64,000 nucleotides of DNA, from the NCBI GenBank assembly GCA_002269645.1, contig NIVC01000731.1, positions 372,001 through 436,000 of the forward strand, in the 5' to 3' direction. This stretch comes from Macrostomum lignano (Eukaryota). Position numbers and translations under genes: made by a program. The notes under the pieces were generated by a model, which was not told the origin of the DNA, made no database searches, and saw only the letters and a program-made list of their open reading frames with translations. Shown here piece by piece: positions 20,013-60,920 of the stretch (positions are counted from its first letter, which is position 1; the number at the start of each line of letters is the position of its first letter).

Positions 20013-23000
20013 TCAGGTCAGGATGTCGGACAGAGACTGGAACTTTGGTCCCCAGGCGTCCAGCGTCGGTCTCAAGTCGATGGAGCTGTCCGTGTCGGCC
20101 GACACCAGACTCACCTGGTCCAGGTCGGCCGCGTCGTCGTCCCGCGTGTCCTCGTAGCCGTAGTTCAGCGTCTCGTCGCCAGCGGCTGCATCCGGGGGCT
20201 CCTGGTTGACGCTGTCTGGCGCCACAGGCTGGGTGGGCGGCGCGCCGATTGGGCGCAGCGGGTCGGCTGGACCGCCGGCTGCGGCTTTTTGGGGGTGTTG
20301 GTTGGTTGGTTGGTCTGTTTGTCATTTTGCTTCCAGTGAGTGCGGCTTCCCAGTGCTGAAGCTATTAGCTGAAGAATGGACCATTCATCTGGCAATAAAA
20401 CTTATTGGAGACTTACAAGGCGCCGATGAATGAACCGGTTGAAAGTTCGGCAGGCCTCCGTTGCTGTCCTTCTGAGCGGGTGGAAATTGCAGACTCAGCG
20501 GTCCTTTGTAGTCCTCGGGAGCTGAAGAAAAGTGAGTCTGATCAGTGACTCTTGGCGCTTAGAGTGAAACAGCAATGGTTGGTGGGTCAGAAGATTTACT
20601 CACGGACGCCGTCATTTCCGGTGTCATCTCCCATGTCCTGGTTTATCTGCTCGATGTCGCTCTTAGGAGCCTCGGACCCCCTTTGCTTTCGTGACCGCTT
20701 TACAAATGCAAGGAGAATCAACAGGACGATGATGAAGAAAACCACGATGGCAATGATGAGCCACACCCACCACTGCACCGCGGCAGTGGAAGGTGCTGGT
20801 GTGTTTTCGCCGCCAACTCGGCACATGCGGCTGGTGACCCCCGGCGGGCAGATGCACTCGAATCCCAGGTTGACGCCCGTCGCCCGGCACGACCCGCCGC
20901 TCGGGCAGCTGATGTTGAACTTGCTGCACGGGTTCACGGCAACGCAGCTCTTGCCCGCGTCTCTCTCCTGTCCTGCTGGACACTCGCAGGTCGTCTTGCC
21001 CCAGAGTCTCCGACAGACTTCCGTTGACGGACAGTCGCAGGGAGGCGTCAGGTCCACACCGTCGGGACCGACTCTGGCATCGCTGGCCAGCACTGGCGTG
21101 ATGAAGCCCCCTGTCGCCACATCGATGGACCGATCTGCAGCATCCGTAGTTGTAGACATGTACGTGCCGGAGACGCGGATGTTCCGCAGCCAGCCTGAGC
21201 GAATTCAGTGGAGAGGTGCTAATTGGTTCAATCAAGGTAGGAAACTGACACACTGGCACAGGCACTGACTTACTGTTGGCGATCTGGGCCGTCAAGTCCA
21301 AGTTCGAGAGGTCGGCCACGGTTCGGCCCAGGTCGTGCAGCCTGTCGACCCCGTCAACTCTCAGCTTGAGCACGGCTTGCCTGGTGGCGGCAAACACGGA
21401 GTGCCACTCGCCATCGTCGACTCTGATCGGCGGAAACGCTAAGCAGCTGGACGAGTTGATGCAGAGCTGCAGCAAGCCGTCCGAAATCTGGAGTCAGGGG
21501 AGGAAAATATTTGTATAAATTGAAGTTATGAGCTTCTTGGCTTCAGTTTAAAAAATTCAGCTCACATCCAAGCTCTGACTCAGAACGGTTGAACGTGCCG
21601 AATTCTTGATAACAGCATGCAGGACGCCAGTCGATGCACTGACTCGAGTTCGCAGCTCCAACTCGATGGATGCGGAATTTTTATCGCTTAGCGGTAGCGG
21701 ATTCGACAGGTTCTGGAACCAGCTGCTCGCATTGCTTGATGCGGTGCTGATTATCAGCGGATCTGCAGTCGAAACGTTCTCAAAATTCAAGCTTTCTAAG
21801 AAAACCTTTCATTTAATGTAGGAAATGTCTCACCTTTGGTGCACGCATTCCAGGGTTCGTTTCTCTTGCATAATTCGCTGCCAATAATTGTCTCTACCAT
21901 TTTTCTCTTCGACCCAAGGCATTCGCAGTTGCAGTCCATCGGAGCTGAGGGATCGTTCTTGATGACTCCGTAGCACACCGACTGCGCTCCGCAGACGTAC
22001 GGGCGGCTGGACCGCGCACCAGCCGTACCTGAGCAGGTTTGATTCTGTAGCCCACAGAAAGCTCCTATCGTGGCGCCTCCACCTTGTGTGACTTCCCTGC
22101 CAGCCGCCATGTCTATCAGGTAGCCGTTCACCCGAACTGACTGCACGCAGCCAGAGAGCGCTCTTCCAATATCAAGCCATAAATTAGGAAAGTCGCTAAC
22201 TGGACTGCCTGCACTGATGCTTTGAGAAGAGCATTCAAGAGGTTGCACACTGGCTGAAGTTGGCAGCTTTTTAGGGCAGACCACCATCCTGCTCTGAAAA
22301 CGGTTGGGATACTTTCCAGCTTCTGACAAATATATCTCAGTATGTATTGTCCAATCAGAACGTCTCTTACCAGTCCAGATTTCACTGATACATGGACAGC
22401 GAACCAGCTGCCGCTGTTTTGCTGAGGTAGGTCAACGCTAATAGAATCTCCTCCCAGTAAACTTCCAGCCACTCTGAGCTCTGTCTTCCTGTAGACAAAC
22501 GTTGCGCTGAGCAATGAGTTATTGGGGTCGGCCGAGCTCTTCAAGACTACGGCGTCCTGGTTTTCTTGCTGGATAGTTCCGGAAAGTTCAAATGAGATTT
22601 CCAGAGACTGAACCGAGTGCGGCAGGCCGCCAATCCAGTGGCGAGTGAAGGTCAGACCGGATAACCCGTGGCTGTAGCTTCTGACCGGGTACTCGCATCG
22701 CGGACCCCACGGGATGTTCGGGACTGACGGGCAGATGCACCTGCAGAGGGTGAAATTTTTTTGATCTGTTGATGAAATTGGTGCTTTTAAATGATGTCAG
22801 GCTTAGCTTTACCGTAGCTCAGCTCAGGCAGAAATTATTTTTCTCAGTCGAGCCGATCGCACACAACTTGCCTGGATCCGACACCAGTGAAGTTGGCATC
22901 GCAGACTCCGCCGTTCAGGCAGGTGGCCGGCCCGCACGGCTCTGCGCTCATCTGCTCCGCTGTCTGAGCCGTCCAGCTCAGCCCGAATCCCACGAAGTTC

Positions 23001-23818
23001 GAGTCGCTGTTGAGCTGCACCACAGCCGGATGCACCGACGGAAGCGAGCTGCTCGAAAAGCGCAGGCGACTGCGGCACAGCTGAGCGGAGTCAGCGGGAC
23101 ACCGGTCCGGCATCACCTGGACTCCGCTACTCGCTTCAGTTTCGTTCTTCACCAGCTCGTACGCCTCCCAGAGGGCCAAGTAGGAGCTGGTGCCGGCCTT
23201 CGGTATGAGCAGGGACACCTCTGAGGTGTCGGCGGCCGGCTGCAGCTGAGAGACGAGGCGGGCCGACAGCCGACTCTTGAGTCTGGCCACCAGACTGTTG
23301 ATGTCGTTCGTTCGACCTGCGGGAATTGAGCGGGCAGTTCTTGTGCGTAGGGAAATCAACAGGTCATGCCAAGCCCCGGCAATACTCACCTGAAATGAAT
23401 ATTGCATTGTCGAGCACGCTCAGGGGCAGCCGGGAGACTGTGACACTGAGCTGGTGAATGGCGGTGCCGATGGTCACCTGGACTAGGTGTGTGCCACCTG
23501 GCAGGTCGGCCTTGAACACAATCCTGTTTGGCACGGAGCTCCTGTCAACATCGAACTTGTCTGGCACCAGCCCGCTGCTCACGCTGTCGATAAGGTCCGA
23601 GCCGCTGATTGTCATGTAGGCGAAGCTGTACTTTGTGAAGTCCGCATCTGAGAAATGATTTAAACAGTTTGATCAGCAATCCATAGCCATGGCGTCTCAC
23701 CCATGTCCCGCAAGTGCAACTCACCGTCCGGCAGCCGGACTTCAACGCTGGCCGAGTCGCAGAGGCCGCCAGTGGCCAAAGCCAGCAGAATGAGGGCTGC
23801 AGAGCTGCACCGAAGCAT
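20013..23818 (-). CDS. DN-cadherin/type III classical cadherin-like protein lacking EC repeats, paralog 1, about 1011 aa: signal - one degenerate EC-like repeat - NCD - EGF - LamG - EGF - LamG - EGF - TM - cadherin cytoplasmic domain. Exons 23818-23725, 23647-23390, 23316-22872, 22740-22371, 22293-21834, 21762-21566, 21487-21274, 21194-20604, 20521-20417, 20314-20013
   Basis: Signal MLRCSSAALILLALATGGLC; EGF CGPATCLNGGVC..CICP..WGPRC; LamG VDDGEWHSV and LSGCVQSVRVNG; TM WWVWLIIAIVVFFIIVLLILLAFV; catenin-binding ETLNYGYE..LDAWGPKFQSLSDIL; exon phases sum to an open frame. Confidence 0.88.
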
Positions 23819-24585
23819 GACCGACCAGCACTGGCTCGGGCTGAAACTGAGGCGAGTCTCTGGCGCTGCGCTCGTGGCTGCTTTGTGTTTGTTTTGGTGC
23901 GCGGCCTCCACCAGTGCGGACTGGCTGGGGTCAGTGGGGGAGTCGGAGGTGGCGGCAGGCACTTTAATCAGCAGGGGGAGAGAAGGGGGCGCATGGAGGC
24001 CGGGCCCAGTCCTAATGCCGAGCTCTGTTGCTGATAAGCGCCGGCCTATGGCGGGTGAGTCAGGCCTTCCCGGGCCCCGCCCCGCCAGATCGAGCAGCCC
24101 GGCAGGCGCAGGACAGGTGCGCATAAAAAGGAATCATTTTTTTCCTACTTTATTTCGCCTACTCGCTGCATAATTGCGGCCCAGCCACCCCCGCCGCCGC
24201 ATTGCAGGCCCAGCGAGTTGTGGGCCGCAGCTTGGGGGGGGGAGTCAGAAATATTCGAATTGCACACGCAGCTCGAGAGCATTTCTTGGAGCTGCAGGGC
24301 GAGACAGAGCAGTCACTGATAAAGTCACCGGGCAGAGCTGAGCCAAGGAGATAAGGCTGCACAGGGCGCGGCTTCGCACTGCCGCAGTTGCTCACACTGC
24401 ACCGCTGCCGCATCTATCTGGCAGGGTCCCGGTGTCTCTTGGATGATCATATTTGACGCCTATTAATATCTATTATAGCTTTGAGGTTTGAGTATGACCA
24501 CACTGCTGTCACAGTACACTGGTAATTCTTCAGTTCGAAACAGATTTTAAACAAGAACTTTGTGGTGGATTCAAGTCAACTAACC

Positions 24586-25497
24586 TGAGGAGAAGAGAGG
24601 AGAAGAGAGGAGAGGAGAGGAGAGGAGAGGAGAGGAGAGGAGAGGAGAGGAGAGAAGAGGAGAGGAGAGGAGAGGAGAGAAGAGGAGAGGAGAGGAGAGT
24701 AGAGAAGAAGAGAGGAGAGGAGAGGAGAGGAGAGGAGAGGAGAGGAGAGGAGAGTAGAGAAGAAGAGGGAGAGGAGAGGAGAGGAGAGTAGAGGAGAGGA
24801 GAGGAGAGGAGAGAAGAGGAGAGGAGAGGAGAGTAGAGGAGAGGAGAGGAGAGGAGAGGAGAGAAGAGGAGAGGAGAGGAGAGGAGAGGAGAGTAGAGGA
24901 GAGGAGAGGAGAGGAGAGGAGAGGAGAGTAGAGGAGAGGAGAGGAGAGGAGAGGAGAGGAGAGGAGAGGAGAGGAGTGGAGAGGAGAGAAGAAGAGAGGA
25001 GAGAAGAGGAGAGGAGAGGACAGTAGAGGAGAGGAGAGGAGAGAAGAGGAGAGGAGAGGAGAGAAGAGGAGAGGAGAGGAGAGAAGAGGAGAGGAGAGGA
25101 GAGTAGAGGAGAGGAGAGGAGAGGAGAGGAGTGGAGAGAAGAAGAGAGGAGAGAAGAGGAGAGGAGAGGAGAGGAGAGGAGAGGAGAAAAGAGGAGAGGA
25201 GAGAGAGGAGAGGAGAGGAGAGGAGAGGAGAGGAGAGGAGAGGAGAGGAGAGGAGAGGAGAGGAGAGGAGAGGAGAGGAGAGGAGAGGAGAGGAGAGGAG
25301 AGGAGAGGAGAGGAGAGGAGAGGAGAGGAGAGGAGAGGAGAGGAGAGGAGAGGAGAGGAGAGGAGAGGAGAGGAGAGGAGAGGAGAGGAGAGGAGAGGAG
25401 AGGAGAGGAGAGGAGAGGAGAGGAGAGGAGAGGAGAGGAGAGGAGAGGAGAGGAGAGGAGAGGAGAGGAGAGGAGAGGAGAGGAGAGGAGGGAGAAG
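24586..25497. repeat. (GAGAG)n polypurine microsatellite, about 900 bp
   Basis: Visible; produces the SSPLL and ERRGE pseudo-ORFs. Confidence 0.98.
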
Positions 25498-25582
25498 ATA
25501 GCTAAGAAGAGACACTAACAATAAGCGGGCCGAATTGGTATTGTGAAGTTTCAAAGGACACGTAGAGAGGCTTTGCGGTCCG

Positions 25583-25830
25583 TATGTGGCCGCCCTGGGT
25601 TAGAGCGTCGGACTCGCGGCTTGAAGGTCAGGGGTTCGATTCCTGATCCCACTGGAACAATTTGTGTCCTTGAGCAAGACACTTGACTCTGCATTGCTTC
25701 AGTTCATCCAGCTGTAAATTGGGTGCCATCATTAGCTGAGGTAATTGAGGGTGTGTGGTGACCCCAGTCCTTGGACTAAACAGCCGTACGCAGCCTTCAG
25801 ATGTATTCAATTATTATTATTATTATTACT
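25583..25830 (+). mobile_element. tRNA-derived CORE-like SINE, family B
   Basis: Head gttagagcgtcggactc..ggttcgattcc; central tgtgtccttgagcaagacactt..cagctgtaaattggg resembles the CORE domain; (tat)n tail; copies at 29135 and 33995. Confidence 0.75.
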
Positions 25831-26479
25831 TGTATTATAATTTGATCAACCAAAATTTGCCAGTTATTTCACTGAAGCCCTCAGCACACCTGTGCAGCGA
25901 TTCGCGTGACTGCGGCCGGCATAAATAAACTGCAGAATTGCAAATCTCGATCCGCATTGCTTTGCATAAAGCCGGGCCCGCCGAGCTTCCAACTGAGGGC
26001 AGTGGCGGTGGCAAATGCCCGCCTGTAACAAAACACCCCGCCATGCTAATTAACCTGCGCTGTGCTGGCGTATCAGCCTCTCCGCTGTGGGAACCAGAAA
26101 CTATGTAATTGAAGACTCTCAATCTTGCATTTTCGAGGTGCGAATGTAGCCATCAGGCTTCAAGAGCTGCTCCAATCAAGATTAATGACTCTAGAAATGG
26201 TGAAGTCTAGTGCAAAACTGCTGGCCCACCAGCCAACCAACTGGACTGCAACGAATTACAAGTATTTCTGCTGTTACAATAACTCGTAAAATTCGTAATT
26301 GTTAGTAAAATCTAGTAAAATTTCTACATGCACTGGATTTCTGGTCAACTGCGCATTGAAACAGGCAGCTGGAAGAAGCTGGAATTTGGGCGACTTCATT
26401 ATTTTTACTTCTTTACTTTCATTGCTTTCTACTATGAGTAGTGCAGTGAGAATTGTTCTGCCGTATGGATAGCTTTATT

Positions 26480-26597
26480 AGGGACAGGGGCTGGGTGCAC
26501 TCTGGCGCACATTGTTACACAACCGGCGAGAGGCATTACTGCCCATTCCGCCGACTCCCCTGAGCAGGCACACAAGCGAGCGGATACGTACGCAGTC
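26480..26597 (-). mobile_element. SINE family A, 3' fragment
   Basis: Shares gcccattccgccgactcccctgagcagg with the other copies. Confidence 0.7.
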
Positions 26598-26599
26598 AA

Positions 26600-27080
<481 letters not shown>

Positions 27081-27731
27081 AGGCCTCCCAAAAGCCACTT
27101 CAATGTGATTGACAGAAATGAAAAATTTAAATGAGGTGTTGGAAACTAGAAGGGTGATCGATATGTGAGCTCAATAAGTGACCGATGGGAGATCGGTTGA
27201 TTCGAAGCCAGCAGAAGCCAGAAATCTAAGAAATGCTTTAACAAACTGGCAATTTTTGCACCCGGCAGCTCTGCACACTCGCCCGAGCGCCCCACCCAGA
27301 TCGATCCGCTGCCAGCCCGAACGAGTGAACAGCCTGCAGATTATTTTCAGCCACTCCCCGGCCCTTCAGTGCCAGCTGGGTTTGCGCCGCCTCGCCTTCC
27401 CAGAGACGCAAAGAATCGCGGCAAAGGTTGCGCCAGCCGTCCACTCAGCCAATTGCACTACGTCGTAGCAGCCAGACCAAATCTGGGGGGGGGGGGTTCT
27501 TCCCTCATCCCTCTCGGGTCCGCAGGCCCTTGATCCCTGTGTAAGCACGAACTTTTAGTAGGCGCTTTTGTTCGCGGCCCCTAGCGGGGTTTTAGCAGGC
27601 GGGCAGAGCGGCTAAAAGGGGATTTCTGCACGAATTTGAGAGTGCAGACACCTGGAAGCTCTCCGAGACCGCCGATCTTCGTCTGACTCACTGGGCAGCC
27701 ACTCTACCAGTGTTTAAAGTTCTCGTGTGTC

Positions 27732-29799
27732 ATGCCGCTGGCGGCTCTCTGGAGTTGCCGTGGCTCCAAAAAGCGGCAGCGAAAAGAGCAGCAGCAGCAA
27801 CATGGAGGCAAGGATCCCACTGCCACCTCCCGCGAGGCTGAGGTACCCGAGGATGTCGACTTGACCGAAGCTCTGGCCGACGAAGAGATCGCCGAGTGCG
27901 TGCAGACTTTCAACACATTCGACTACGACAACGACGGACGCATAAGCATGAAGGAGCTTGGCAACATCCTGCGCTGCCTTGGATACGGCTGCTCTCGGGC
28001 AGAGCTCAAGGTGAACTATCTTGGTATATAGTTGACAATATTCCTAGAGCCGCTAGGAATACTATGGTAGTCTCTAGGTGAGACAAGTCTAAACTCTACA
28101 GAGCCTTACCTGCCGAGCGTTCCTCCAGACCACAGAATTGTCCAGACAGAATCCTCCAGACCACAGAATTGTCCAGACAGAATCCTCCAGACCACAGAAT
28201 TGTCCAGACAGAATCCTCCAGACCACAGAAATGTCCAGACAGAATCCTCCAGATCACAGAATTATCTAGACAGAATCCTCCAGACCACAGAAATGTCCAG
28301 ACAGAATCCTCCAGACCACAGAATTGTCCAGACAGAATCCTCCAGACCACAGAAATGTCCGGACAGAATCCTCCAGACCACAGAATTGTCCAGACAGAAT
28401 CCTCCAGACCACAGAATTGTCCAGACAGAATCCTCCAGACCACAGAATAGTCCAGACAGAATCCTCCAGACCACAGAATTATCCAGACAGAATCCTCCAG
28501 ACCACAGAAATGTCCAGACAGAATCCTCCAGACCACAGAATCCTTCAGACCACAGAATCCTCCAGACCACAGGTCTCCCTGCTGACATTTATTACCATAC
28601 AATAGTAAAATTGTGTAGCCAATGCTAACGTGTGGATATGCCCCCACCTGTCCAATTTATGCTACATATCTGGTCAACTCTAACTTATGTACAGCCAAGT
28701 CTTTGTATAGACAAGCGTTCGGCAAACTCTTTTACGTCAAGGGCCAGATAGAGAACGTAGCGCACGACTGCGGGGAGGCGAGAGACGAGGGAAGAGAGAA
28801 GAGAGATTGGAGAAAGGGAGGCAATGAAATAAAGGAGACGACAGAAGAAGGAGAGATGAAATAGGAGAAGGAAGACGAGAGAAGAGAGAAAGGAGCTGAG
28901 AAGAGAGACAAATCTTAAGCAGGCCGGATTGCTATTGTAAAGCTTAAAAGAACACGAGGGTCGGATAGAGAGGCTTTGTGGACCGATCCCTGGCATAGAA
29001 GAAACCATCCCTTCTCGGCTGGAAAGGCTTGGCATGGCAGAGTGCTGAAGTTCCAGTGACAGTCTGCGGCCAGCCCTGGTGACCAGGCCAGCTGGAACGG
29101 AGTTTTTGCTGTATTCTCATTGTCTGAGTTGCAGGAGATTGTAGCCGAGTGGTTAGAGCGTCGGACTCATGACTTGAAGGTCGGGGGTTCGATTCCGGAT
29201 TCCACTGGAACAATTTATGTCCTTGATTAGCTAGGGTATTTGAGGCTGTGTGTGGCGACCCCCCTGACCATGGACTGAACAGCCGTACGCAGCCTTCAGA
29301 TGCGCCGCGCAATAGCTGCGGCTGAGCTGTCGGTTGCACATCTGGCCCAATTCGAGCAGGTGTAATCAGTTATTATTATATTACTGGGTTGCAGAATTCA
29401 CTGCAGAGGTCTCTGGATGTCTTTAAGTGGTAAGAATTCCCGCAAAACTCGAAACTTGGGCCTCAGAGTGCAGCCCTGCTCCCGCAGGAGATGTTCGCCG
29501 GCATTGACAAGAACGGAAACGGCTTCATTGACCTGCAGGAGTTCCTCGGCCTCGTGGGCCTCGGGCAGCTTCGCCACCGGCAGCAGACGGACCGCCAGCT
29601 GGCGAAGGCCTTCCGAGTCTTCGACGCCGACCGAGACGGCTTCATTGGCCCGGCGGAGCTGCGGGCTGCCCTGCGCCGCCTGTTGAAGCCCGCTGAGGTC
29701 ACCGACCGACTGGTGGACGACATGATTCGCGGCGCTGACCGTGACGGCGACGGACGCGTCTCCTTTGCCGAGTTCGTCGGCATCGTCAGCCCGCGGTAG
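27732..29799 (+). CDS. Calmodulin-like four-EF-hand protein with an N-terminal extension; exons 27732-28010 and 29488-29799
   Basis: EF loops DYDNDGRISMKE, DKNGNGFIDLQE, DADRDGFIGPAE, DRDGDGRVSFAE; phase-0 GT-AG junction. Confidence 0.9.
28120..28572. repeat. Minisatellite, 31-bp unit (ccagacagaatcctccagaccacagaattgt), intron of the EF-hand gene
   Basis: Tandem copies visible. Confidence 0.95.
29135..29385 (+). mobile_element. CORE-like SINE family B, internally deleted copy
   Basis: gtagccgagtggttagagcg..ggttcgattcc head; same 3' end (cagatgcgccgcgcaatagctg..) as the 34.0-kb copy. Confidence 0.75.
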
Positions 29800-30604
29800 C
29801 CGGAGCCATTGTGGATCGAGGCCAGCTGAGAGCTGGGGAATGCGGCCCAGTTTCTTGCCTTCCATCTGAAGAGCCCAATGACTCCACAAGCTGATATTGG
29901 TTGCACTCGTAGTTAAAATTTAGCGCTGTTTTTGCTGTACAGTACAGAATTCTTGGATCGCGTGCGTGCGGATGTCATTGCCCCAGGCTGCTGCGAGAAA
30001 TTTGCTTAAAAACAAACACTTTTTGTTGTCTCGATGAACTGCTGAGTTTTTTGCTAAGTTTACTCACTTCTCGCTTGTTGGGACGCAGAAGAAGAAATCT
30101 ATGCACTGTATCAGTGGGTAAATTCGCCCACTATGCATCAGCCCTAACCCAAGACAGATACTCAAGCCTGCTTAGTTTCTCACCGATTGGACATGGAGAC
30201 ATTTTGGGCTCTGTGAAGTCCTCTACTGACTCTACTCAGATGTAGATATGACCTCAGTGTAAAATGCTGGTACTACTTAGGATGCTCCGTCAATCTTCGT
30301 CCCCCGCGAGCTCGCAGACAACTCGGTGTACAATTGGCATATGTCTCGGGGCAGAGAAGTACAACTCAGGCTCAGGCGCAAACAATGAGAGCTTCAAGGC
30401 GTCCATATTTCTTGCACTCAGAGCTTCTCAACAGCAGCGAAGGAAGAGGAGGCGAGGTTCGCTACCGAAACTTGAAAAACTTTGCCTAGATAATTTCTAT
30501 CTGGGGGACGAAAATGAAACAGTCGGACAGTTGAAGCTGTGTTAGCTAAAAACTGCTCAAAACGCTGAATTTCTCAAATCGCTCCAAAACTCCAATCATC
30601 AAAA

Positions 30605-32092
30605 ATGCGAGCAAGTCAAGCAGTCACCGTCGCTCACATCGCGGTGCTGCTGACGATGCGCTGCTGCCTGAAGGTCATGGAGTACCAGTTCATCACACTG
30701 GCCGCAGCAAGCTCCAATGCCAGCACCGCCACCGAGGGAGTGGCGGACTCGGCCTCAGCGCTGTCCTGGATGTACACCTGCCGCTTTTTGCTAGGCGCTC
30801 TGGGCGGCCTGCTGGCCTGCTGGATCGGCCACGTGCGCACCCTGCAGCTGGGCGGCTGCGTCCTGCTGGCATCGGCTGGCGCCATGGCCGGCGCCGTGTA
30901 CACAGACCAGTGGAGCCCGGACTCTGGCGCCGCGCTGACCGCCTGCGCCCTCATGCTGGTCTACAACGGCCTGGTGATCCCCAACGTGATGTACGCAGTG
31001 CTGAGCAAGCGGACGAGGCCGCAGCGCCGCACGGTGCTCTGCGCGCTCGTCTACATGTCCTCCGCGGCCGGCCTGTTTGTGGGCATCCAGGTGCAGCACC
31101 TGCTGACCAACCCGAGCGTTGGCAAGCACTGCAGCCTCGTCTGGTTGGCCTTCGCCCTCGCCTTTGCCGCGCTCGCTATCCTGGCGCTGCCGCGGCTCGA
31201 CGCAGCAGCCGCGATGGCACCGAGCTCCGGGCAGCTCGACACGGCTCCGCCGCCGCCGTTTTCGAAGCTGCTGTGCGACTGCGGGCACGTCCTGCTGCCG
31301 ACTTGGAGCCGTCTGAAGCGCAGCTGCATCGTCTTCGGGACGCTGATCCCCTTCCTGGTGGGTCTGTGCGATGACCGGTCCTCGGCCTTCAACGCGCAGC
31401 GGGCGCTGCAGCCGCTCATCGCCAACTCCAGCGGAGGTAACTCCGGAAATGACCGATTGAGCGATTCGCTGGATAGCGCGCTGCTGGCAGTCAGCCTGGT
31501 GGCCGTCAACGGAGGTCTGGTGGTCGCCGCCTGCTGCCTGCGCGGTCGCAGACGTCTCCCAGTGCAGCCGCGGCTCCTGGCGGGCATCGTCATGGAGGCG
31601 GCCCTGGAGCTGGCGCTGGCGGCAGTCAGTGGCGTTGGGCTGGCCGACCCTGTGGCCGTGTCCGCGGTGTACACCGCTTCTACAGTGGTGGACGCGACCG
31701 CCGCCGCGCTGACGATGGTGGCCGCCTACGAGCTGATGGACAGCTTTGAGCGGGACGCCGCAATGCCACTGATTTTCGGCATCATGCTGACTGTGTGGGG
31801 TCTCGCGAACCTGGCCAGCCGCTGTATTGTCACGATCTGCCGCCGCTTGCCGCCCGACAACCCGATCCTGCAGCCGAGCGCCGGCAAGCCGCCTCTGCTG
31901 TTCGTCTACCACTCGCTGCTGCTGGCGCTGCTGCTGCTGAGCCTCGCCTTCTGGCGGCTGTTCGCCCTGCGGCTTGCCCGCTCGCTGCAGGTTATATATG
32001 AGGACGAGGGGCCGGAAGCTGCCGCCGGCCCCGTCAACGATGGCGACGGGGAGAACCGGCCGCTGCTGAACCCGCCATCAACTGATGGGTGA
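30605..32092 (+). CDS. Intronless MFS-fold transporter, 495 aa, probably a divergent POT/PTR2 (SLC15-like) member
   Basis: Long GC-rich ORF with many hydrophobic segments; LLGALGGLLACWIGHVRTLQLGG, GLVIPNV and LVYMSSAAGLFVG resemble POT motifs. Confidence 0.72.
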   Translation: MRASQAVTVAHIAVLLTMRCCLKVMEYQFITLAAASSNASTATEGVADSASALSWMYTCRFLLGALGGLLACWIGHVRTLQLGGCVLLASAGAMAGAVYTDQWSPDSGAALTACALMLVYNGLVIPNVMYAVLSKRTRPQRRTVLCALVYMSSAAGLFVGIQVQHLLTNPSVGKHCSLVWLAFALAFAALAILALPRLDAAAAMAPSSGQLDTAPPPPFSKLLCDCGHVLLPTWSRLKRSCIVFGTLIPFLVGLCDDRSSAFNAQRALQPLIANSSGGNSGNDRLSDSLDSALLAVSLVAVNGGLVVAACCLRGRRRLPVQPRLLAGIVMEAALELALAAVSGVGLADPVAVSAVYTASTVVDATAAALTMVAAYELMDSFERDAAMPLIFGIMLTVWGLANLASRCIVTICRRLPPDNPILQPSAGKPPLLFVYHSLLLALLLLSLAFWRLFALRLARSLQVIYEDEGPEAAAGPVNDGDGENRPLLNPPSTDG

Positions 32093-32548
32093 CGGCGATG
32101 GGCTCATAACCCTCTATACGTGTAATAATTGACCATTCGTAGGCTTTCTCAAGACCTACTTAGGACTTTACGAACTTTAAGAGATATCTTGCTCACATCG
32201 AAATCGCGCGCACAGAATTTGCGCAACCTATTTTAACAATTGTTGAACTCTCTTCACCGGTTACCCCAGTAGCCACATGGAATCAGTCTGCAAAACTGAG
32301 GTCCAGATCGCTCAAAGTCTCAGGTCATGCATTATGCTGGGCCGCTACAGTTGATTGATATAATGAATAAGTAAACATATTTTTCGATAAAAAGCTCCAC
32401 ACAGCAATACTTTCGTTTTCATTTAACTTCTGTGAAGATTACCCTAGCCATTCTAACATAGCGAACCGTAAACACCTTCTGACAATGGTTTATTTAGTCA
32501 TGAACAACTCCGAAATATGAACTAAATGTAGTCATCAACATGCAGCAC

Positions 32549-35500
32549 TCAGATGCATTTCGCTGCATATCTCCGCGGCGTTGAGCGCTGAGCTCCTGAC
32601 GATCGTCGAGACTGCGTTCGACGCCGCAACAGAAACACAAGAGCCACCACGATGAGGATGAGCACCATGACTCCGATGCTTACAATCAGCCAGACCCACC
32701 AGTTGACTCCGGCAGAGGTGAAAACTGTTCTGGCTTCACTGCTACTCCTGCACATGGTGACCCCCGGCGGGCAGATGCACTCGAATCCCAGGTTGACGCC
32801 CGTCGCCCGGCACGACCCGCCGCTCGGGCAGCTGATGTTGAACTTGCTGCACGGGTTCACGGCAACGCAGCTCTTGCCCGCGTCTCTCTCCTGTCCTGCT
32901 GGACACTCGCAGGTCGTCTTGCCCCAGAGTCTACGGCAGACTTCCGTTGACGGACAGTCGCAGGGAGGCGTCAGGTCCACACCGTCGGGACCGACTCTGG
33001 CATCGCTGGCCAGCACTGGCGTGATGAAGCCCCCTGTCGCCTCATTGATAGACCGATCTGCAGCATCCGTAGTTGTAGACATGTACGTGCCGGAGACGCG
33101 GATGTTCCGCAGCCAGCCTGAGCGAATTCAGTGGAGAGGTGCTAATTGGTTCAATCAAGGTAGGAAACTGACACACTAGCACAGGCACTGACTTACTGTT
33201 GGCGATCTGGGCCGTCAAGTCCAAGTTCGAGAGGTCGGCCACGGTTCGGCCCAGGTCGTGCAGCCTGTCGACCCCGTCAACTCTCAGCTTGAGCACGGCT
33301 TGCCTGGTGGCGGCAAACACGGAGTGCCACTCGCCATCGTCGACTCTGATCGGCGGAAACGCGAAGCAGCTGGACGAGTCGATGCAGAGCTGCAGCAAGC
33401 CGTCCGAAATCTGGAGTCAGGGGAGGAAAATATTTGTATAAATTGAAGTTATGAGCTTCTTGGCTTCAGTTTAAAAAATTCAGCTCACATCCAAGCTCTG
33501 ACTCAGAACGGTTGAACGTGCCGAATTCTTGATAACAGCATGCAGGACGCCAGTCGATGCACTGACTCGAGTTCGCAGTTCCAACTCAATCGATACGGAG
33601 TTTTTATCGCTTAACTGTAGCGAATTGTTCGGGTTCTCGAACCAAGTGCTTGGATTGCTTGATGCGGTGCTGATTATCAGTGGATCTGCAATTTCAATCA
33701 GTTCACTGAAGTTCAAGTGGGGGTTGTAGCCAGTGGGGGTTGTAGCCAGTGGGGGTTGTAGCCAGTGGGGGTTGTAGCCAGTGGGGGTTGTGGCCAGTGG
33801 GGGTTGTAGCCAGTGGGGGTTGTGGCCAGTGGGGGTTGTAGCCAGTGGGGGTTGTAGCCAGTGGGGGTTGTGGCCAGTGGGGGTTGTGGCCAGTGGGGGT
33901 TGTAGCCAGTGGGGGTTGTAGCCAGTGGGGGTTGTGGCCAGTGGGGGTTGTAGCCAGTGGGGGTTGTAGCCAGTGGGGGTTGTGGCCAGTGGGGGGTTGT
34001 AGCCTAGTAGTTAGAGCGTCAGACTCACGACTTGAAGGTCGGGGGTTCGATCCCCGATCCCACTGGAACAATTTGTGTCCTTGAGCAAGACGCTTAACTC
34101 TGCATTGCTTCAGTTCACCCAGCTGTAAAATGGGTGCCAGCAATAGCTGGGGTAATTGAAGGCGTGTGGTGACCCCCCGTCCTTGGACTGAACAGCCGTA
34201 CGCAGCCTTCAGATGCGCCGCGCAATAGCTGCTACTGAGCTGTCGGTTGCACATCTGGCCCAATTGGGGCAGGTGTAACCAATTATATTATTATTATTGT
34301 TTACTGAAGTTCAGCTTTGGGTTATCAAGCTATGTGTGAATTCCAAACTCGTCTTACCTTGTGTGCACTCGTTGGACTGCCGATCTTTCCTGCACTTGGC
34401 ACTGGAGCCGACCGTCTCAAGCTTCTTTCGCTTCGATCCCAGGCACTGGCAGTTGCAGTCCATCGGAGCTCCTTTGCTTTTAGTCACGATCCCATAGCAG
34501 ACCGACTGCGCTCCGCACACGAATGTGCCGGAGCCGCCGCAGCTGCCGCTTTGAAACTTGCAGTCGTCTTCCACTTTGGAGTCCCCGGTTGTCACGGCCC
34601 TGCTGGCCTTCGCGTCCACCAAATAGCCGTTCACGGTGACTGATTGCACGCAGCCAGTGAGCGCCTGGCCGATCTCAAGCCAGAGGTTGGTAAAGTCCGA
34701 GACCGAACCACCAGAATTGACGCTCTTGGTCTGGCACTCGAGCGGAATTGGATTGCTTGAGACGCCTGCGAGCTTCTTTGGGCACAGAACTGCTCGAGTC
34801 TGCAATTGGTTGCCAAGTTGGTTCAGCTCTGGTTGATAAGCAAGCGCATGCGAGATTTATCCCAGAAACTCTCACCAGATTTGGAGTCATGAGAATGTGA
34901 AAAGTGAACCAGTTCCCTTGGTTAAGGCCTGCAGATGATACATCAAAGCTTTTTCCAAGAAGCAGACTTCCGGCCACTCTGAGTGTTGTAGTCCGGAAGA
35001 TCAGCGATGCACTGAGCATTGAACTGCCTGGATTGTTGGGACTCTTCAGCGCCAGCGTCTCGTGGCCTGCTTTTTCGATTGATCCGGACAGCTCAAATGA
35101 GATTTCCAGAGACAGAGCCGAGTGCGGCAGGCCGCCAATCCAGTGGCGAGTGAAGGCCAGACCGGATGACCCGTGGCTGTAGCTTCTGACCGGGTACTCG
35201 CATCGAGGACCCCACGGGGTGTTCGGCGCTAACGGACAGATGCACCTGCAGATTGGCAGAACTTTTTTAATCAGGCTTTACTAACAGATGCAACTAGCAA
35301 TCTAGTGCTTCTAATGGGGTTCTATTAGCAAGAAACGAAAAATATTTATGAGAACCTCTTAAAACGAAAGCATTTCTCTTAAAAGCATTCCTATTTCAGT
35401 TTAATAAATCACTTTGTTCGAGTAAATTTGTTCAAAAAATTGAATAATTTTTTTGAATAAACTAAATGTATGTTCTGACCTTTCAGTCTTGATACGCTCG

Positions 35501-38218
35501 TCTCTGCATTTTTCCCAGTAAGCCTTGACATCTCAGCAATTCCCCCAGTAAGCCTTGACATCTCAGCAATTCCCCCAGTAAGCCTTGACATCTCAGCAAT
35601 TCCCCCAGTAAGCCTTGACATCTCAGCAATTCCCCCAGTAAGCCTTGACATCTCAGCAATTCCCCAGTAAGCCTTGACATCTCAGCAATTCCCCCAGTAA
35701 GCCTTGACATCTCAGCAATTCCCCCAGTAAGCCTTGACATCTCAGCAATTCCCCCAGTAAGCCTTGACATCTCAGCAATTCCCCCAGTAAGCCTTGACAT
35801 CTCAGCAATCCCCCAGCAAGCCTTGACATCTCAGCAATTCCCCCAGTAAGCCTTGACATCTCAGCAATCCCCCAGCAAGCCTTGACATCTCAGCAATCCC
35901 CCAGCAAGCCTTGACAAAGATACTGTCCTAAAATGAAAACGGAATTTTGTAACCTTCGAACTGTCAGGCACGCTTGTTTAAATTGTCAGGACAAGGCTGA
36001 CAAGGACAAGGACAAGGTTGTCAAGGCTGTGGTTTAAGCCTACATATCAGAGACAGCAATGAGAAGGGATATACGCTATCAACTTGGAAAGCTTATCGGC
36101 ACCTGCGTCAATATTCCGGCATAATGTTTTCGAGACTTCTCTTTCAAAAGCTGAAAAATAACATTCGTGCAGAAAATCTAAGAAAGCGGGCAGAACAGTC
36201 TTTAGCCACGCCTGTGCTTGAGAGCCACCTGAATTCACCTGAACCCGAAGCCAGTGAAGTTGGCATCGCAGACTCCGCCGTTCAGGCAGGTGGCCGGTCC
36301 GCACGGCTCTGCGCTCATCTGCTCGGCTGTCTGAGCCGTCCAGCTCAGCCCGAATCCCACGAAGTTCGAGTCGCTGTTGAGCTGCACCACAGCCGGATGC
36401 ACCGATGGAAGCGAGCTGCTCGAAAAGCGCAGGCGACTGCGGCACAGCTGAGCGGACTCAGCGGAACACCGGTCCGGCATCACCTGGACTCCGCTACTCG
36501 CTTCAGTTTCGGTCTTCACCAGCTCGTACGCCTCCCAGAGGGCCAAGTAGGAGCTGGTGCCGGCCTTCGGTATGAGCAGGGACACCTCTGAGGTGTCGGC
36601 GGCCGGCTGCAGCTGAGAGACGAGGCGGGCCGACAGCCGACTCTTGAGTCTGGCCACCAGACTGTTGATGGGGTCTCGAGAACCTGTTTAATAATAGGCA
36701 AGCAGTGCGGGTGTTGATAACTGAGTTTGAAAATGAGCATTAGCTATTTATACTGGCAGCTCCATACCAGCAATGAAGATGGCGCTGTCAATGACGCTCA
36801 GTGGCAGGCTGGAGACTCGCAAATTCAACTGGTGAGATACAGTTCCAGCTTTCACCTGCACCACGTGTACGCCATTCTTTAGGTCGGGAGGCCTGAGCAC
36901 GAGTCTGTTGGGTGTGGAGCTCTTGTCAACGGTGAACTTGGTCGCAACGTCGCCTGCGCCGATCACTCTGTCCATCCTGTCTACGCCCGATATTCTCAGG
37001 TAGGCGGCGCCGTACTTTCTGAAGTTGGCATCTGCGCGTTGACGGAGAGGGAGCGCAACGTTTTGATTTGTTTTAGCTGGTCGCACGGTTGCACAAAAAG
37101 TAATTAAGGGTGGGATGTGGGCACCCTGGATCAATGCTTCCGGTAAAATCGTCCCACAACCAGCGGCGGGGCGATTCTTCCCATTGCACTGACTCCTGGG
37201 CACGCGCTGTACTGTCCCAAGTGGATCAGGCGAGGGGAGAGGGGGGACATGCCAATGCTTTGTCCCCCCACCCGACCTCCTGACCCGTTGTGATAATCAA
37301 CACTTTTTCTTCAGGGTGCAAAATATAGCGCCAAAAATAATGCCTGCGGAGCTAAAGGGAATGCCTGCGGCGCAAAAATGAGTACCTGCGGCGCCTAAAT
37401 GAGTGCCTGCGGCGCAAAAATGAGTACCTGCGGCGCCTAAATGAGTGCCTGCGGCGCAAAAATGAGTACCTGCGGCGCCTAAATGAGTGCCTGCGGCGCA
37501 AAAATGAGTACCTGCGGCGCCTAAATGAGTGCCTGCGGCGCAAAAATGAGTACCTGCGGCGCCTAAATGAGTGCCTGCGGCGCCTTAATGAGTGCCTGCG
37601 GCGCAAAAATGAGTGCCTGCGGCGCAAAAATGAGTACCTGCGGCGCCTTAATGAGTGCCTGCGGCGCAAAAATGAGTGCCTGCGGCGCCTAAATGAGTGC
37701 CTGCGGAGCTAAAAGGAGTGCCTGCGGTGCCTAAATGAGTGCCTGCGGCGCCAAATGACTTCTTGCGGCGCCAAATGACTTCTTGCGGCGCCAAAACAAG
37801 TGCCTGCGGCGCTAAAAGGAATGTCTGTGGCGCCAAAATGAGCGCTGACCACACCGATTCTCAAAAGACGAGTAATGGACATGTAGGAATTTGGTCATGC
37901 ATATGTACATGTTGAATTCTTGGCTTCGTCCCCCCCACCATAAAATCCATGGCGACGCCCCTGATGTGGATACTGCACGCAGGCGCGCTCTCAAAGACAC
38001 GCTTCCACAGGGTGTACAGCAGACCTCACTTCTTAATCGTCAGGCGTGTGCACTCTCTGCGTGTGCACTCTCTGGATTGGCCCTCAAAGATGTGTACGTT
38101 CAACAGGAGGCTGGCACTCACCATCTGGTAGCAAGACTTCAACTTCAGCTTTGTCGCAGTAGGCACTGGCGAGCACCGCCAGCAGGATGGCTGCAACTGC
38201 AGGTCCGTACCGGAGCAT
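32549..38218 (-). CDS. EC-less DN-cadherin-like paralog 2, about 865 aa, with only a short basic cytoplasmic tail. Exons 38218-38122, 37031-36768, 36683-36239, 35245-34876, 34799-34358, 33685-33489, 33410-33197, 33117-32549
   Basis: Signal MLRYGPAVAAILLAVLASAYC; exon-for-exon colinear with paralog 1 (several identical exon lengths: 445, 370, 197, 214); TM WWVWLIVSIGVMVLILIVVALVFLL, then RRRTQSRRSSGAQRSTPRRYAAKCI-stop. Confidence 0.87.
33716..34302 (+). mobile_element. CORE-like SINE family B preceded by a 16-bp minisatellite, bounded by an 11-bp target-site duplication
   Basis: actgaagttca at 33705-33715 and 34303-34313; SINE from about 33990; (tat)n tail. Confidence 0.85.
35510..35915. repeat. 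Minisatellite, 30-bp unit (cagtaagccttgacatctcagcaattcccc), intron of cadherin-like paralog 2
   Basis: Tandem copies visible. Confidence 0.95.
37227..37963 (-). mobile_element. hAT-like MITE (same family as 16283-16550) with an expanded internal repeat of about 23 bp
   Basis: End tggcgacgcccctg; flanks aagtggat / atgtggat; internal (aaatgagtgcctgcggcgc..)n at about 37340-37830. Confidence 0.78.
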
Positions 38219-39250: not shown

Positions 39251-39254
39251 GCGG

Positions 39255-39560
39255 TCTGAAGGGCTGGCCGCATCCTGGGGAATTCCCATTTCCCATCCAG
39301 CGGGTTTAAAGGGCTGGCCACATCCTGGGAAATTCCTACCCAGTGGGTCTGAAGGGCTGGCCGCATCCTGGGGAATTCCCATTTCCCACCCAGCGGTTCT
39401 GAAGGGCTGGCCGCATCCTGGGGAATTCCCACCCAGCGGTTCTGAAGGGCTGGCCGCATCCTGGGGAATTCCCACCAGCGGATCTGAATGGCTGGCCGCA
39501 TCCTGGGGAATTCCCACCCAGCGGGTCTGAAGGGCTGGCCGCATCCTGGGGAATTCCCAT
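39255..39560. repeat. Minisatellite, about 41-bp unit (ctgaagggctggccgcatcctggggaattccc..)
   Basis: Tandem copies visible. Confidence 0.9.
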
Positions 39561-40564
39561 CCCTCTTGCAAGACACGATGTGAATTCGAGCATGTGTACT
39601 GGTTGTTGTCGGTTTGAGGGGCTGAGCAGGAACTGAAAGAGGCTTCATTTTTCAGTTTAAATGGCTCACTTGAGTCTAAACCTATGTCGGCTATCTGGAT
39701 AAGGGTCTGCTTCACACGTCACTATTGATAGTAGTATCAACAGCAGTTTAAACGTTTTGGTTTCCCTTTTTCGTACCTAGTGATTTTCGTTGCATACTAC
39801 TGTGACATGATCATGAGTAAAGTGCAAGTTGATTTTTTCTACACGTATTTATGTGTTAAAACGCCGAGATGAACCTGACATTCGACCCGGCCAGTTCCAG
39901 TTCTCCTATGCTTGCTAGCTGAGAAAGTCAACACAGACCGCTCTGTTTGTCCTCGACAAACTGTGGTGCAGACAGCCCTCCGCTTGTCTAATCTTCATGC
40001 TGAGCTGTCTATGACAGAAAAGCTCTCAAAACAAAAAAGACTGCTAGCAACCCGCAGTTAACTCAATCACTGAAGTGCGGGACTGTATTTTCCTGATGGC
40101 TCTTGGGGCTCGCATCTGTGAGGCGCAGGCGGGAGTCTTCCGAAATCACACGGCGTCATGCAAATAACATGCGAAAATTAATTAAAAAGCAATTTAGGAA
40201 ACTGGACCAAAAGTTTACTGGGCATGGAGAAACGAGAGCATCGATTCGATTGACAAAGTATACGACGTAAATCCGAGGCTGTTTCTCCTGGGGTACTGCA
40301 CAGACAACGATTAGATATCGAAAATTCGAAAGAGGCGCAGACACACTGGGCTCGAGGCCGATGTCGAGCTGAGTGAAGTTAAGCAAAGCGAGTTCCATGG
40401 GGATTCGATCAGGTTCTCAGGGAGAATTTGCGCAAATTCGAGCCAGTCAATCAATATTCGCTGATTAAGAAAATTGACATTTAAGCCGCAGTCTTTCCAC
40501 TACAAAGCAAATTAATTACAGAGTGCGCATCGGCCTGAGGAAAGGGGGAGTCGCGTCGGCAGCT

Positions 40565-45099: not shown

Positions 45100-46170
45100 T
45101 TAGGCCACGCCTCTGCCACTCTCAGCCACGCCACTTCCACTACCTATGTATCAAACTCGTTGTTGTGTAGCCGCCAGTGCATTGTTACGAATCCAACTTG
45201 CATTTCTGTTGACAATAAACCAAATCTGCAGCCATTGATTGCATTAACTTTAACTTTAACTGATATTACTGCCAAGTGCTACCGCTACAAATTTGCCTCT
45301 GCCGCATTCATTTGCCTTCGCTTATTCTCGGGGCCGCCACGCTAGTATTCGTCACAATAGGCATCATTTCTCTTTGGTGTCCTGCGAAATTCTAACTCCT
45401 TTATTGAACTTTCACATTCGGGAATTCTGTAGCTGAAAGTTCTATTAGCGAGTCTGCAAAAGCGTCTTTCGACTCACTTCTTCCTTGTACGCGTCATTTA
45501 AACTCTTCCTTAAACTCTGACGCATTTCCTATATTCTGCTGAATCTCTCGATCGTTCCATAAAATCTTCGCACTCTAAATAGTCTGGCAAATTAAGTCGC
45601 ATGCAGATGTTGGATCAAAATTGGCTAGCAATTATGTTTTCCTATGGTTTAACTCAATTTTTTACAGAGTCGCACCTCTGATCAAAGGTTGTTTACCATA
45701 TCATAATATCCTGGCTTAGCGTGTATTTTGAATTCTAACATGTCTTGTCGGTCTTAATTCAAGACAATTCCTAAGTTCTTCAGCTAAGAGTGTTAATGCG
45801 TCATTAATACCTGACATTGTAAGTTATTACTTCACGTAATAATTAAATTGCCTCTCACTGTATCTTGATCCCAAGCCAAGAGCCAATAGTCAACAGCTAC
45901 AACTCAAGTTGTTTCCGTATTTCACACAGATTATTCATCCAAAAGCAAAAATTATGCTGATTGGACTCATTATACTCTGTAATTAATAAATGGCGAAACT
46001 TTTCAAATTGTGCTCAGTAAGTATTTGTAAAAGGTTACAATTAATAGAATATCGGCTTTTTGACATGTTAATCTGCAACGGGGACAGCGGCACTGATAGC
46101 AAAGTTTCTAATTAACCTGGAAGGCAACGGGGACCGCGTCATTGATAAGAATTGAGCATCTTGTTTTTCA

Positions 46171-52598: not shown

Positions 52599-53170
52599 GC
52601 GGCCGCCGCAGCCCAGACTCTCGCTAGCTTCATCAGTCCAATCTCGAATCTCCGGCCTGGATCAGAGAAACGGCGGGGCTTGAGGGGCGGCGGGCGTCCG
52701 GAGCTCGAGTCCTCGGAGGCGGATCAGGAAGTCGGGTTGGTTGAAGGCCGCTTCAATCGCCCCCCCTCCGCACTCCACAGGAAAATGCGAAGTAGCAGAG
52801 AAGAAGAAATGGCTTGGGAAAGAAATTGCGAAGCCCCATGGAGAGCTGAAATTCCTTTTAATAAGAAAAGCGAATTTTCACTCCCAGATGATCTGCACGA
52901 ATCGGGTCGGTCTGCAGTCTCCGGGCCCCGATGAGTCACTCGATTCCGGTCGGCTGCGGGCTGCGGATTTTGCACCGGGCCAGCGCTGGGCCGGGGGCGG
53001 CTTGAGAAGCCAATTCGGCTGCTGGAAACCCGACACCGGGGGGGGGGGCATTTCTGGCTGAGAGATGAGAGTCTGGCTGGGTATCGCCACCTGCGGGTTC
53101 CCAGCGGATTGCCAGCACGGCAAATATGCTGGCCTTCTGGATCTGTTGGAATTCGTTTCTCTGCTGCAAA

Positions 53171-53511
<341 letters not shown>

Positions 53512-60846: not shown

Positions 60847-60920
60847 GGCGCTGGCGGGGGCTCAAGTATGGACTGGCTGGTGCTGGCGTGGCTGGCAGGT
60901 GCTGCAGTCGGATGGACACA

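Follow-up and report, generated by a model that had tools for sequence, protein, structure and literature searches.

Organization of genes A and B

The stretch of Macrostomum lignano DNA analysed here (64 kb; contig NIVC01000731.1, positions 372,001 to 436,000 of the forward strand, hereafter the window) is eukaryotic, rich in repeats and carries on its minus strand a tandem pair of genes, A and B, of type III (DN-cadherin-like) classical cadherin ancestry, in which the entire array of extracellular cadherin (EC) repeats has been lost. Exon-by-exon reconstruction of gene A (coding region 20013..23818) gives 10 exons, at 23818–23725, 23647–23390, 23316–22872, 22740–22371, 22293–21834, 21762–21566, 21487–21274, 21194–20604, 20521–20417 and 20278–20013, which run from an ATG at 23818 to a stop codon at 20013–20015 and encode 999 aa. 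According to this splice model and its profile alignment (hhalign) to type III cadherins, the product is composed of a signal peptide, a probable clipped EC remnant, an NC/PCPS-like region, an EGF module (CE1), a first LamG domain (LamG1), the Cys-rich CE2, a second LamG domain (LamG2), two EGF-like modules (CE3), a transmembrane (TM) helix and a classical-cadherin cytoplasmic tail. Gene B (32549..38218) comprises 8 exons, at 38218–38122, 37031–36768, 36683–36239, 35245–34876, 34799–34358, 33685–33489, 33410–33197 and 33117–32549, with its ATG at 38218 and its stop codon at 32549–32551. The 865-aa product has a gene A-like ectodomain and TM segment followed by a cytoplasmic stub of 24 aa that lacks the catenin-binding region. 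The introns of both genes are all GT-AG, except intron 3 of gene A (GC-AG).

Exon 1 of gene A (23725..23818, 94 nt) provides the ATG and the signal peptide MLRCSSAALILLALATGGLC and ends in phase 1 at a GAC G/GTGAGT donor (slash, exon end), intron 1 being just 77 nt long. Similarly, exon 1 of gene B (38122..38218, 97 nt) encodes an ATG and the signal peptide MLRYGPAVAAILLAVLASAYC and ends in phase 1 at a G/GTGAGT donor, and an in-frame stop lies 87 nt upstream of this ATG. Exon 2 spans 258 nt and 86 aa in gene A (23390..23647, phase 1 at either end), where it encodes an all-beta domain that is probably a vestigial last EC, and 264 nt and 88 aa in gene B (36768..37031, phase 1/1), the two EC-remnant domains sharing 56% aa identity. 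An earlier note on this DNA had described, in both genes, a signal-peptide exon joined in phase 1 to an exon of about 86 aa, and the reconstruction agrees with it in exon length and in coordinates. The residue that it had placed at the junction was Gly; the joining of the exons holds, whereas the spliced codon, G+AT, encodes Asp (..VEVRLPD-D-ADF..). The gene A junction is the same in three proteins, P0001, P0002 and P0044. Intron 1 of gene B measures 1,090 nt and is filled by a 21/42-nt satellite, and introns 1, 3 and 5 of this gene are enlarged by three satellite arrays.

Upstream of gene A, a 5' leader (23819..24133, minus strand) is collinear with exon 1 and open in frame over 105 codons, and a further in-frame ATG lies in it at 24124. 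Annotated gene A proteins flagged as partial begin within this leader, and the NCBI models carry that flag because the leader is open in frame with the coding sequence. Use of the ATG at 24124 would make the gene A signal peptide internal. Conservation of the leader was considered as evidence for coding and set aside, flanking non-coding DNA being equally conserved between homeologs.

Exon 3 of gene A (22872..23316) encodes the NC/PCPS-like region and the first half of the EGF module CE1. The following intron opens with a GC donor, CAG/GCAAGT at 22866–22871 (minus strand), where gene B has GT at the matching site; older WormBase-type models drop half of the first EGF (..SAEPCICPS..), probably due to this donor. 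The end of CE1, LamG1 and the Cys-rich CE2 are encoded by exons 4–5 (22371–22740 and 21834–22293, together 21834..22740), the part of gene A most diverged from gene B, with 54–61% aa identity. Exons 6–8 (21566–21762, 21274–21487 and 20604–21194, together 20604..21762) encode LamG2, the two EGF-like modules, the TM segment WWVWLIIAIVVFFIIVLLILLAF and the start of the tail; Pfam detects LamG (5e-7) and EGF in these exons, and neural-cadherin tblastn matches reach 6e-9. Exons 9–10 (20417–20521 and 20013–20278, together 20013..20521) encode a degenerate juxtamembrane region and the predicted catenin-binding region (..ETLNYGYED..DLDQVSLVSADTDSS..LDAWGPKFQSLSDILT, then the stop codon).

Homeologous copies, gene conversion and selection

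The closest protein match to gene A is M. lignano BOX15_Mlig000582g1, with 96% identity. Another annotated protein, Mlig019320g1 (P0003), is 97–100% identical to gene B exon by exon and 73% identical to gene A, and the UniProt copies carry the name 'EGF-like domain-containing protein'. Every annotated version, P0001 and P0003 included, has the same exon 1/exon 2 junction, and EC repeats occur in none. A homeologous locus in the same assembly (L002, GCA_002269645.1) is 93–98% identical to the window over the longest aligned blocks and presents the same order, namely gene B, a small open reading frame (ORF) on the opposite strand, an EF-hand gene and gene A; a further locus (L003) holds one more gene A copy. 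The gene arrangement is thus reproduced in homeologous copies of the polyploid genome, and three loci of the Mlig_3_7 assembly, as well as two annotation sets, show this architecture. The earlier argument that an architecture shared by both paralogues speaks against an assembly artefact is strengthened by the same design in the homeologous loci.

When compared with the homeologous copies, every exon is full length and free of indels, with dN/dS of 0.34 and 0.39 for gene A and 0.29 for gene B. Between genes A and B, exons 1, 2, 4 and 5 show 54–61% protein identity, dN/dS of 0.19–0.49 and dS of 0.7–2.0. All copies are under purifying selection (dN/dS 0.2–0.5), and the possibility of pseudogenes was rejected on these values and on the intact ORFs. 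Exon 3 and exons 6–8 lie mostly inside two tracts of higher identity detected by blastn on the minus strand. Tract 1 (32755..33690) is 97.2% identical to gene A 20832–21767 over 936 nt, two introns included, and tract 2 (36238–36670) is 97.7% identical to gene A 22871–23303, which takes in most of exon 3. Gene conversion is indicated by the 97% identity of these tracts, two introns included. The mosaic of identity between the two genes suggests that conversion is still going on and leaves the EC remnant and the LamG1/CE2 block untouched.

Descent from type III classical cadherins

The membrane-proximal order EGF-LamG-EGF-LamG-EGF followed by a single TM segment is present in genes A and B, as revealed by hhalign, by Pfam and by the hydrophobic TM segment, which is directly readable in both sequences. 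A profile of A, B and P0005, a relative encoded by a transcript-like contig described below, was compared through hhalign with a profile of seven type III cadherins, each trimmed to start 115 residues ahead of the NC anchor and to run to its C-terminus. Locally, 555 columns spanning CE1 to CE3 align (E=7e-40, probability 100%), and the global alignment extends over 874 columns (E=1.5e-58), beginning in the region of signal-peptide cleavage and reaching the final residue. This profile evidence is far stronger than that of the sequence scan described next.

P0001, the annotated homeolog of gene A, leads to the same family when it is scanned with phmmer against 1.84 billion representative proteins. 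All long matches (2,415–2,969 aa) cover P0001 residues of about 670–1094 only, which correspond to gene A residues of about 575–999, and are neural-cadherins or unnamed type III proteins of Strigamia, Ptychodera, Ylistrum, Anneissia, Fragariocoptes, Babylonia and Owenia, a set made up of a centipede, a mite, a hemichordate, a crinoid, two molluscs and an annelid. The N-terminal two thirds of P0001 are matched by just two clusters, those of gene B and P0005, and the same scan contains no amphioxus-like protein of about 1000 aa matching this part. A word-based search with the C-terminal 320 aa of gene A gave a single M. lignano fragment. A sequence search of the PDB returned nothing significant, the nearest entries being neurexin (E=0.014) and Gas6 LamG domains. 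An identity as neurexin, crumbs or Fat was considered and discarded: the best named relatives are neural-cadherins, whose alignments continue through the TM segment and the tail, and the neurexin LamG match is non-significant. The assignment of the ectodomain to the classical cadherins therefore stands, with both hhalign and phmmer pointing to type III.

Absence of EC repeats

Type III cadherins retrieved as tblastn queries comprised seven proteins with at least 13 ECs each, to which a 974-aa fish protein named neural-cadherin was added. With these eight queries, EC-region matches in the window reach at best an E of about 0.6, and the significant matches of the type III cadherins are confined to the membrane-proximal exons of genes A and B (best 6e-9). 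The same outcome was obtained for L002 and L003 with 10-kb flanks, two loci without any cadherin repeat or Ca-binding motif. Whichever of its six frames is read, the window lacks the motifs DxNDxxP, DxNDN and DxDxGxN; of the looser patterns, [LIVF]DRE and DADxxxN have one match each, on the plus strand and outside genes A and B. In the two proteins the cadherin repeat family PF00028 is absent by Pfam, where LamG and EGF are found. The claim that neither gene contains Ca-binding motifs thus holds for the strict motifs and fails for a literal DxD, as a D-A-D is present at the exon 1/2 junction. No EC-like exons were seen upstream of the genes in the window, as had been noted: both the tblastn with type III cadherins and the scan for the strict motifs are empty there, and the space is occupied by other genes. 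The expected Pfam content of 0–1 cadherin repeats with LamG, EGF and Cadherin_C was obtained as far as LamG, EGF and the lack of PF00028 are concerned, the C-terminal match remaining sub-threshold.

The N-terminal EC remnant and the NC/PCPS-like region

The N-terminal block, from the mature N-terminus to CE1 with its EGF included, aligns with type III cadherins at E=3.4e-13 (hhalign), starting right past the signal peptide and opening with ..SVEVRLPDDADF.. on ..RVYATDEDDWDW.. of the last EC. Exon 2 alone aligns with the last EC of type III cadherins over 82 collinear columns, strands B–G, with P=0.0033, in comparison with 0.075 and 0.4 over about 20 columns in cross-controls. In the multiple alignment PDDADF falls opposite the DPDDWD motif. 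For NC taken by itself P is 0.014, and its two cysteines, together with those of the EGF module, are invariant in the multiple alignment with type III cadherins, where the start of NC (SGSIR..EEFI) is shortened. AHGSPYY, a motif almost invariant in the NC/PCPS of the retrieved type III proteins, has AGTSSYL as its counterpart in A and B and KTGKVIP in P0005 (gene A residues of about 135–145; alignment A1, columns of about 200–215).

The N-terminal 250 aa contain neither PF00028 nor Ig_Shg, even at E<=10. As controls, a genuine type III last EC is itself sub-threshold for PF00028 in four of five cases (E 2e-4 to 4e-3), and Ig_Shg matches P0004 at 2.4e-21, leaving A and B unmatched. An AlphaFold2 model of the N-terminal 266 aa, from an 11-sequence alignment, has a mean pLDDT of 53 and displays an all-beta fold over residues 1–84 followed by a beta-alpha-beta-beta-alpha-beta arrangement. 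The top six Foldseek matches of this model are CDH23 EC25-MAD28 and PCDH15 EC-MAD12, with E=0.01–0.05 and none below 0.001. The structure prediction that had been suggested thus produced an all-beta domain and EC-MAD-like top matches at low confidence, a mere hint that carries little weight. Taken with the profile alignments, exon 2 is probably, though not provenly, a clipped EC remnant without strand A and without Ca sites, followed by a PCPS/MAD-like region. The NCD assigned by the earlier note may correspond to a collinear NC/PCPS-like region, the profile match being weak (P=0.014) and Pfam Ig_Shg unmatched. The genes do stand alone as encoding the membrane-proximal part, as proposed, and the description of them as fully headless probably does not hold, since exon 2 aligns weakly with the degenerate last EC.

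The cytoplasmic tails

Gene A retains a recognisable classical-cadherin cytoplasmic domain with what appears in sequence to be a conserved C-terminal beta-catenin-binding core. The phmmer search aligns its tail with the C-termini of neural-cadherins, and the alignment keeps ..ETLNYGYE.. (Y.YE), an acidic/Ser stretch and the terminal LDAWGPKFQSLSDIL (L..WGPKF..L.D), where the pattern characteristic of type III tails is ..SLSSL..WGPRF..LADMY. Gene B departs from gene A just past CE3, retains the TM helix and stops 24 residues later, and an AATAAA polyadenylation signal (32489..32494, minus strand) follows about 55 nt past its stop codon. The 64-kb window holds no other sequence similar to exons 9–10 of gene A. 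The proposal that these proteins are wired to catenins can therefore hold for gene A only, through its predicted tail, because gene B stops 24 residues past the TM segment and the rest of the window is free of tail-like sequence.

P0005 and relatives in other flatworms

P0005 (797 aa, 30% identity) is a complete ORF on a 2.7-kb transcript-like Logan contig (L001 1–2698, run SRR30276812). An in-frame stop lies upstream of its ATG, the signal peptide leads directly into the homologous ..PDDPDF.. domain, and the stop codon is located past the last EGF with no TM segment, which indicates a secreted form. A search seeded with the trematode protein P0016 returned proteins of 735–784 aa from Fasciola, Trichobilharzia and Schistosoma, as well as a 522-aa N-terminal fragment from Heterobilharzia. 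A signal peptide is present in three of the four returned models, the 735-aa Trichobilharzia model beginning at the conserved MGSPP motif. The full-length trematode proteins display the order EGF-LamG-EGF-LamG-EGF-TM and a short tail with ..LEYGYEGYD.., and PF00028 is found in none (loci L004 and L005 of Schistosoma haematobium and L006 of Fasciola hepatica; proteins P0016 and P0056–P0059). The Schistosoma and Fasciola genes extend over 40–52 kb and contain no EC-like sequence within them or 10 kb upstream. The search of other flatworms for the same architecture, which had been recommended, has thus found EC-less relatives.

The recommended phylogeny was computed by neighbour-joining on the CE1–CE3 region (557 columns, 200 bootstraps, without outgroup). 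It recovers taxonomic groups among the full-length cadherins and places A, B, P0005 and the trematode proteins in one clade with 100% bootstrap. These sequence comparisons suggest that genes A and B may be part of a wider flatworm family together with the trematode proteins. Full-length type III cadherins were retrieved in molluscs, an annelid, a hemichordate, an echinoderm and arthropods, and the loss of ECs in flatworms would most simply be independent of that in amphioxus because full-length type III proteins exist in other spiralians, ambulacrarians and arthropods. The literature on flatworm or Macrostomum classical and type III cadherins yielded no description of these genes.

Neighbouring genes and repeats

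The space upstream of gene A, between the two genes (27732..32092), is filled by plus-strand genes unrelated to A and B. These are a multi-exon EF-hand (calmodulin-like) gene at about 27732–29799 and an intronless, GC-rich ORF of 495 aa at 30605–32092, very hydrophobic and without a Pfam match; at the place of the latter the homeologous locus calls just a 177-aa ORF on the opposite strand. Upstream of gene B lie, on the minus strand, a eukaryotic aspartyl-protease gene at about 46100–50000 (DTGSS motif, Pfam Asp 2.4e-5) and a LIM-domain protein gene at 59440–60861 (Pfam LIM 1.5e-21) with a long Pro/Ala/Arg-rich region. Micro- and minisatellite arrays occupy 24587–25495, 26600–27082, 28121–28572, 33716–34004, 35514–35916, 37328–37842, 39253–39561 and about 52900–53500. 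They include a 900-nt (GAGGA)n array, strongly skewed in GC/AT, (AGAC)n/(AGAT)n arrays and units of 16, 30/31 and 21/42/43 nt, the (AGAC)n type being found again near 53 kb.

Proposed function and alternative explanations

Genes A and B are probably an intact tandem pair of type III descent whose EC array was lost, gene A encoding a Ca-independent, catenin-coupled adhesion receptor and gene B an uncoupled partner or competitor. A new first exon with a signal peptide would have been spliced into the former last, already degenerate EC repeat, such that the mature protein would open with about 80 residues of EC remnant, continue through the PCPS-like region and the EGF/LamG modules and end with the TM segment. 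Gene A would act as the amphioxus Bb-cadherins do, as a LamG/EGF receptor for Ca-independent adhesion between cells that is linked via beta- and alpha-catenin to actin. Gene B, with NC/CE1 and LamG2/CE3 blocks held in common with gene A by conversion and a diverged LamG1/CE2, would be a catenin-uncoupled partner, competitor or specificity variant of gene A, and the diverged LamG1/CE2 may set specificity. Several points weigh against this explanation. Adhesion, catenin binding and localisation of A and B are all proposed by analogy. The gene A tail matches Pfam CADH_Y-type_LIR at E=6.6e-4 and 20.1 bits, below the curated cut-off of 24 bits, and its p120 core has the degenerate sequence YDEEGGGE. 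Catenin coupling is not uniform across the family, as P0005 stops before any TM segment and gene B is tailless. Taken singly, the assignments of the EC remnant and of NC are weak (P=0.003 and 0.014), with PF00028 and Ig_Shg unmatched and a pLDDT of 53, and the flatworm clade may reflect long-branch attraction in a simple neighbour-joining tree without outgroup.

The main rival is an accessory role beside a full-length cadherin, which we consider unlikely. The products would be non-adhesive by themselves and would mimic the membrane-bound C-terminal fragment that results from PCPS/NC cleavage of type III/IV cadherins, pairing with, capping or competing with a full-length cadherin or its N-terminal subunit, and gene B and secreted proteins of the P0005 type would be decoys. 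DE-cadherin is indeed cleaved in PCPS with its halves held non-covalently (PMC3216324), A and B begin just upstream of the PCPS-like region, the NC/CE1 exon is held 97.7% identical between them through gene conversion, and a tailless gene B and a secreted P0005 are what modulators would look like. However, no full-length partner was identified, the start of NC (SGSIR..EEFI) is shortened and AHGSPYY has become AGTSSYL in A and B, the NC region is absent altogether from the trematode relatives, and the EC-less cadherins of amphioxus adhere unaided. Quite improbable in our view is a re-purposed LamG/EGF receptor that, like neurexin, dystroglycan ligands or crumbs, would bind matrix or heterophilic ligands and whose tail would be a relic no longer recruiting catenins. 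LamG and EGF are classic ligand-binding units, the nearest sequences of solved structure are the non-significant neurexin and Gas6 LamG domains, and the degenerate juxtamembrane domain and sub-threshold tail match of gene A, like the trematode tails that end soon past Y.YE without WGPxF, would fit such a relic. In contrast, the C-terminal catenin-binding core of gene A is kept in sequence and in position and is under purifying selection with the rest of the gene, and the domain order is exactly that of a type III cadherin and not of neurexin.

An incomplete gene or an artefact, with EC exons farther upstream or on another scaffold and signal exons that are spurious or minor alternative first exons, is the explanation to which we give very little credence. 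The window does end 25.8 kb upstream of gene B, and the annotated gene A proteins are flagged partial owing to the open leader. Yet the two signal exons end at strong, correctly phased donors, with a gene A intron 1 of just 77 nt, the ATG of gene B and that of the P0005 transcript are each preceded by a stop, the upstream regions are occupied by other genes, and the same architecture is found in the three Mlig_3_7 loci and two annotation sets.

Beyond M. lignano, it is conceivable, if rather doubtful, that flatworms from Macrostomorpha to trematodes replaced the EC-bearing adherens-junction cadherin with a monophyletic family of EC-less, Ca-independent LamG/EGF proteins, reduced stepwise by loss of the EC array, then of the EC remnant and NC in trematodes, and of the tail in some paralogues. 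Were this so, flatworms would be a second animal lineage, independent of amphioxus, whose cadherin-catenin junctions do without cadherin repeats, and the membrane partner of the adhesion-dedicated flatworm beta-catenin would be identified; planarian beta-catenin studies have relied on mammalian E-cadherin as binding partner. The interest would be greater if flatworms proved to be without any EC-bearing classical cadherin. Ca-binding EC repeats define classical cadherins, and to our knowledge the amphioxus Bb-cadherins are so far the single odd case of a catenin-linked junctional receptor that lacks them. A second EC-less lineage, of independent origin and apparently phylum-wide, would imply that the membrane-proximal LamG/EGF module is able to assume the role of functional ectodomain more than once, would offer a tractable system for testing the function of that module, RNA interference and transgenesis being established in M. 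lignano, and would bear on the cohesion of flatworm epithelia and of parasitic fluke tissues. The function of the LamG/EGF membrane-proximal module in type III and IV cadherins is still unclear (PMC3216324). At present the genes are labelled 'hypothetical protein', 'EGF-like domain-containing protein' or, misleadingly, 'Neural-cadherin'.

Comparison with known cadherins

The design had been presented as unprecedented, which is incorrect, as EC-less classical cadherins are already described in amphioxus (PMC3216324). The Bb1- and Bb2-cadherins possess conserved classical tails, no ECs and LmG/EGF modules in common with type III cadherins, and mediate Ca-independent homophilic adhesion, bind catenins and localise with beta-catenin at adherens junctions (Oda et al. 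2002, 2004, as summarised in PMC3216324). What is new here is the EC-less classical-cadherin design in flatworms, with one copy also tailless, the design having previously been described only in amphioxus. By published description, the Bb-cadherins combine a classical tail with an EC-less LamG/EGF ectodomain, as gene A does with its predicted catenin-binding tail; gene B corresponds to the ectodomain half of this definition only, its catenin tail being lost. Like A and B, the Bb-cadherins are a pair of paralogues, and both pairs are expected to work without Ca. In contrast with the Bb-cadherins, which belong to Cephalochordata, A and B belong to Spiralia and keep a probable EC remnant and a PCPS-like region, and they are known from sequence, whereas adhesion, catenin binding and junctional localisation have been demonstrated for the amphioxus proteins.

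The trematode proteins of 735–784 aa (Fasciola, Schistosoma, Trichobilharzia and Calicophoron), named 'Neural-cadherin' or 'unnamed protein product', are EC-less like A and B and about 25–30% identical to gene A, being gene predictions whose 5' ends were checked by sequence only. They differ in that the EC remnant and NC are also missing and their tails lack the terminal WGPxF..L.D core.

Type III cadherins (DN-cadherin or 'neural-cadherin', 2,400–3,000 aa) are collinear with A and B over the last EC, NC/PCPS, CE1, LG1, CE2, LG2, CE3 and the TM segment, and with gene A also over the tail, at an identity of about 20–28%. Their 13–17 Ca-binding EC repeats are all absent from A and B, where in addition the NC start is shortened, and the p120-binding core of gene A is degenerate. 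The ancestral type III ectodomain has likewise undergone lineage-specific shortening in type IV (DE-cadherin) and in type I/II cadherins (PMC5473995, PMC3216324), and in DE-cadherin the two halves produced by cleavage in PCPS remain bound non-covalently through the PCPS domain (PMC3216324). Those lineages retained 5–9 functional ECs and lost the membrane-proximal modules, whereas in genes A and B the opposite part of the ectodomain was lost.

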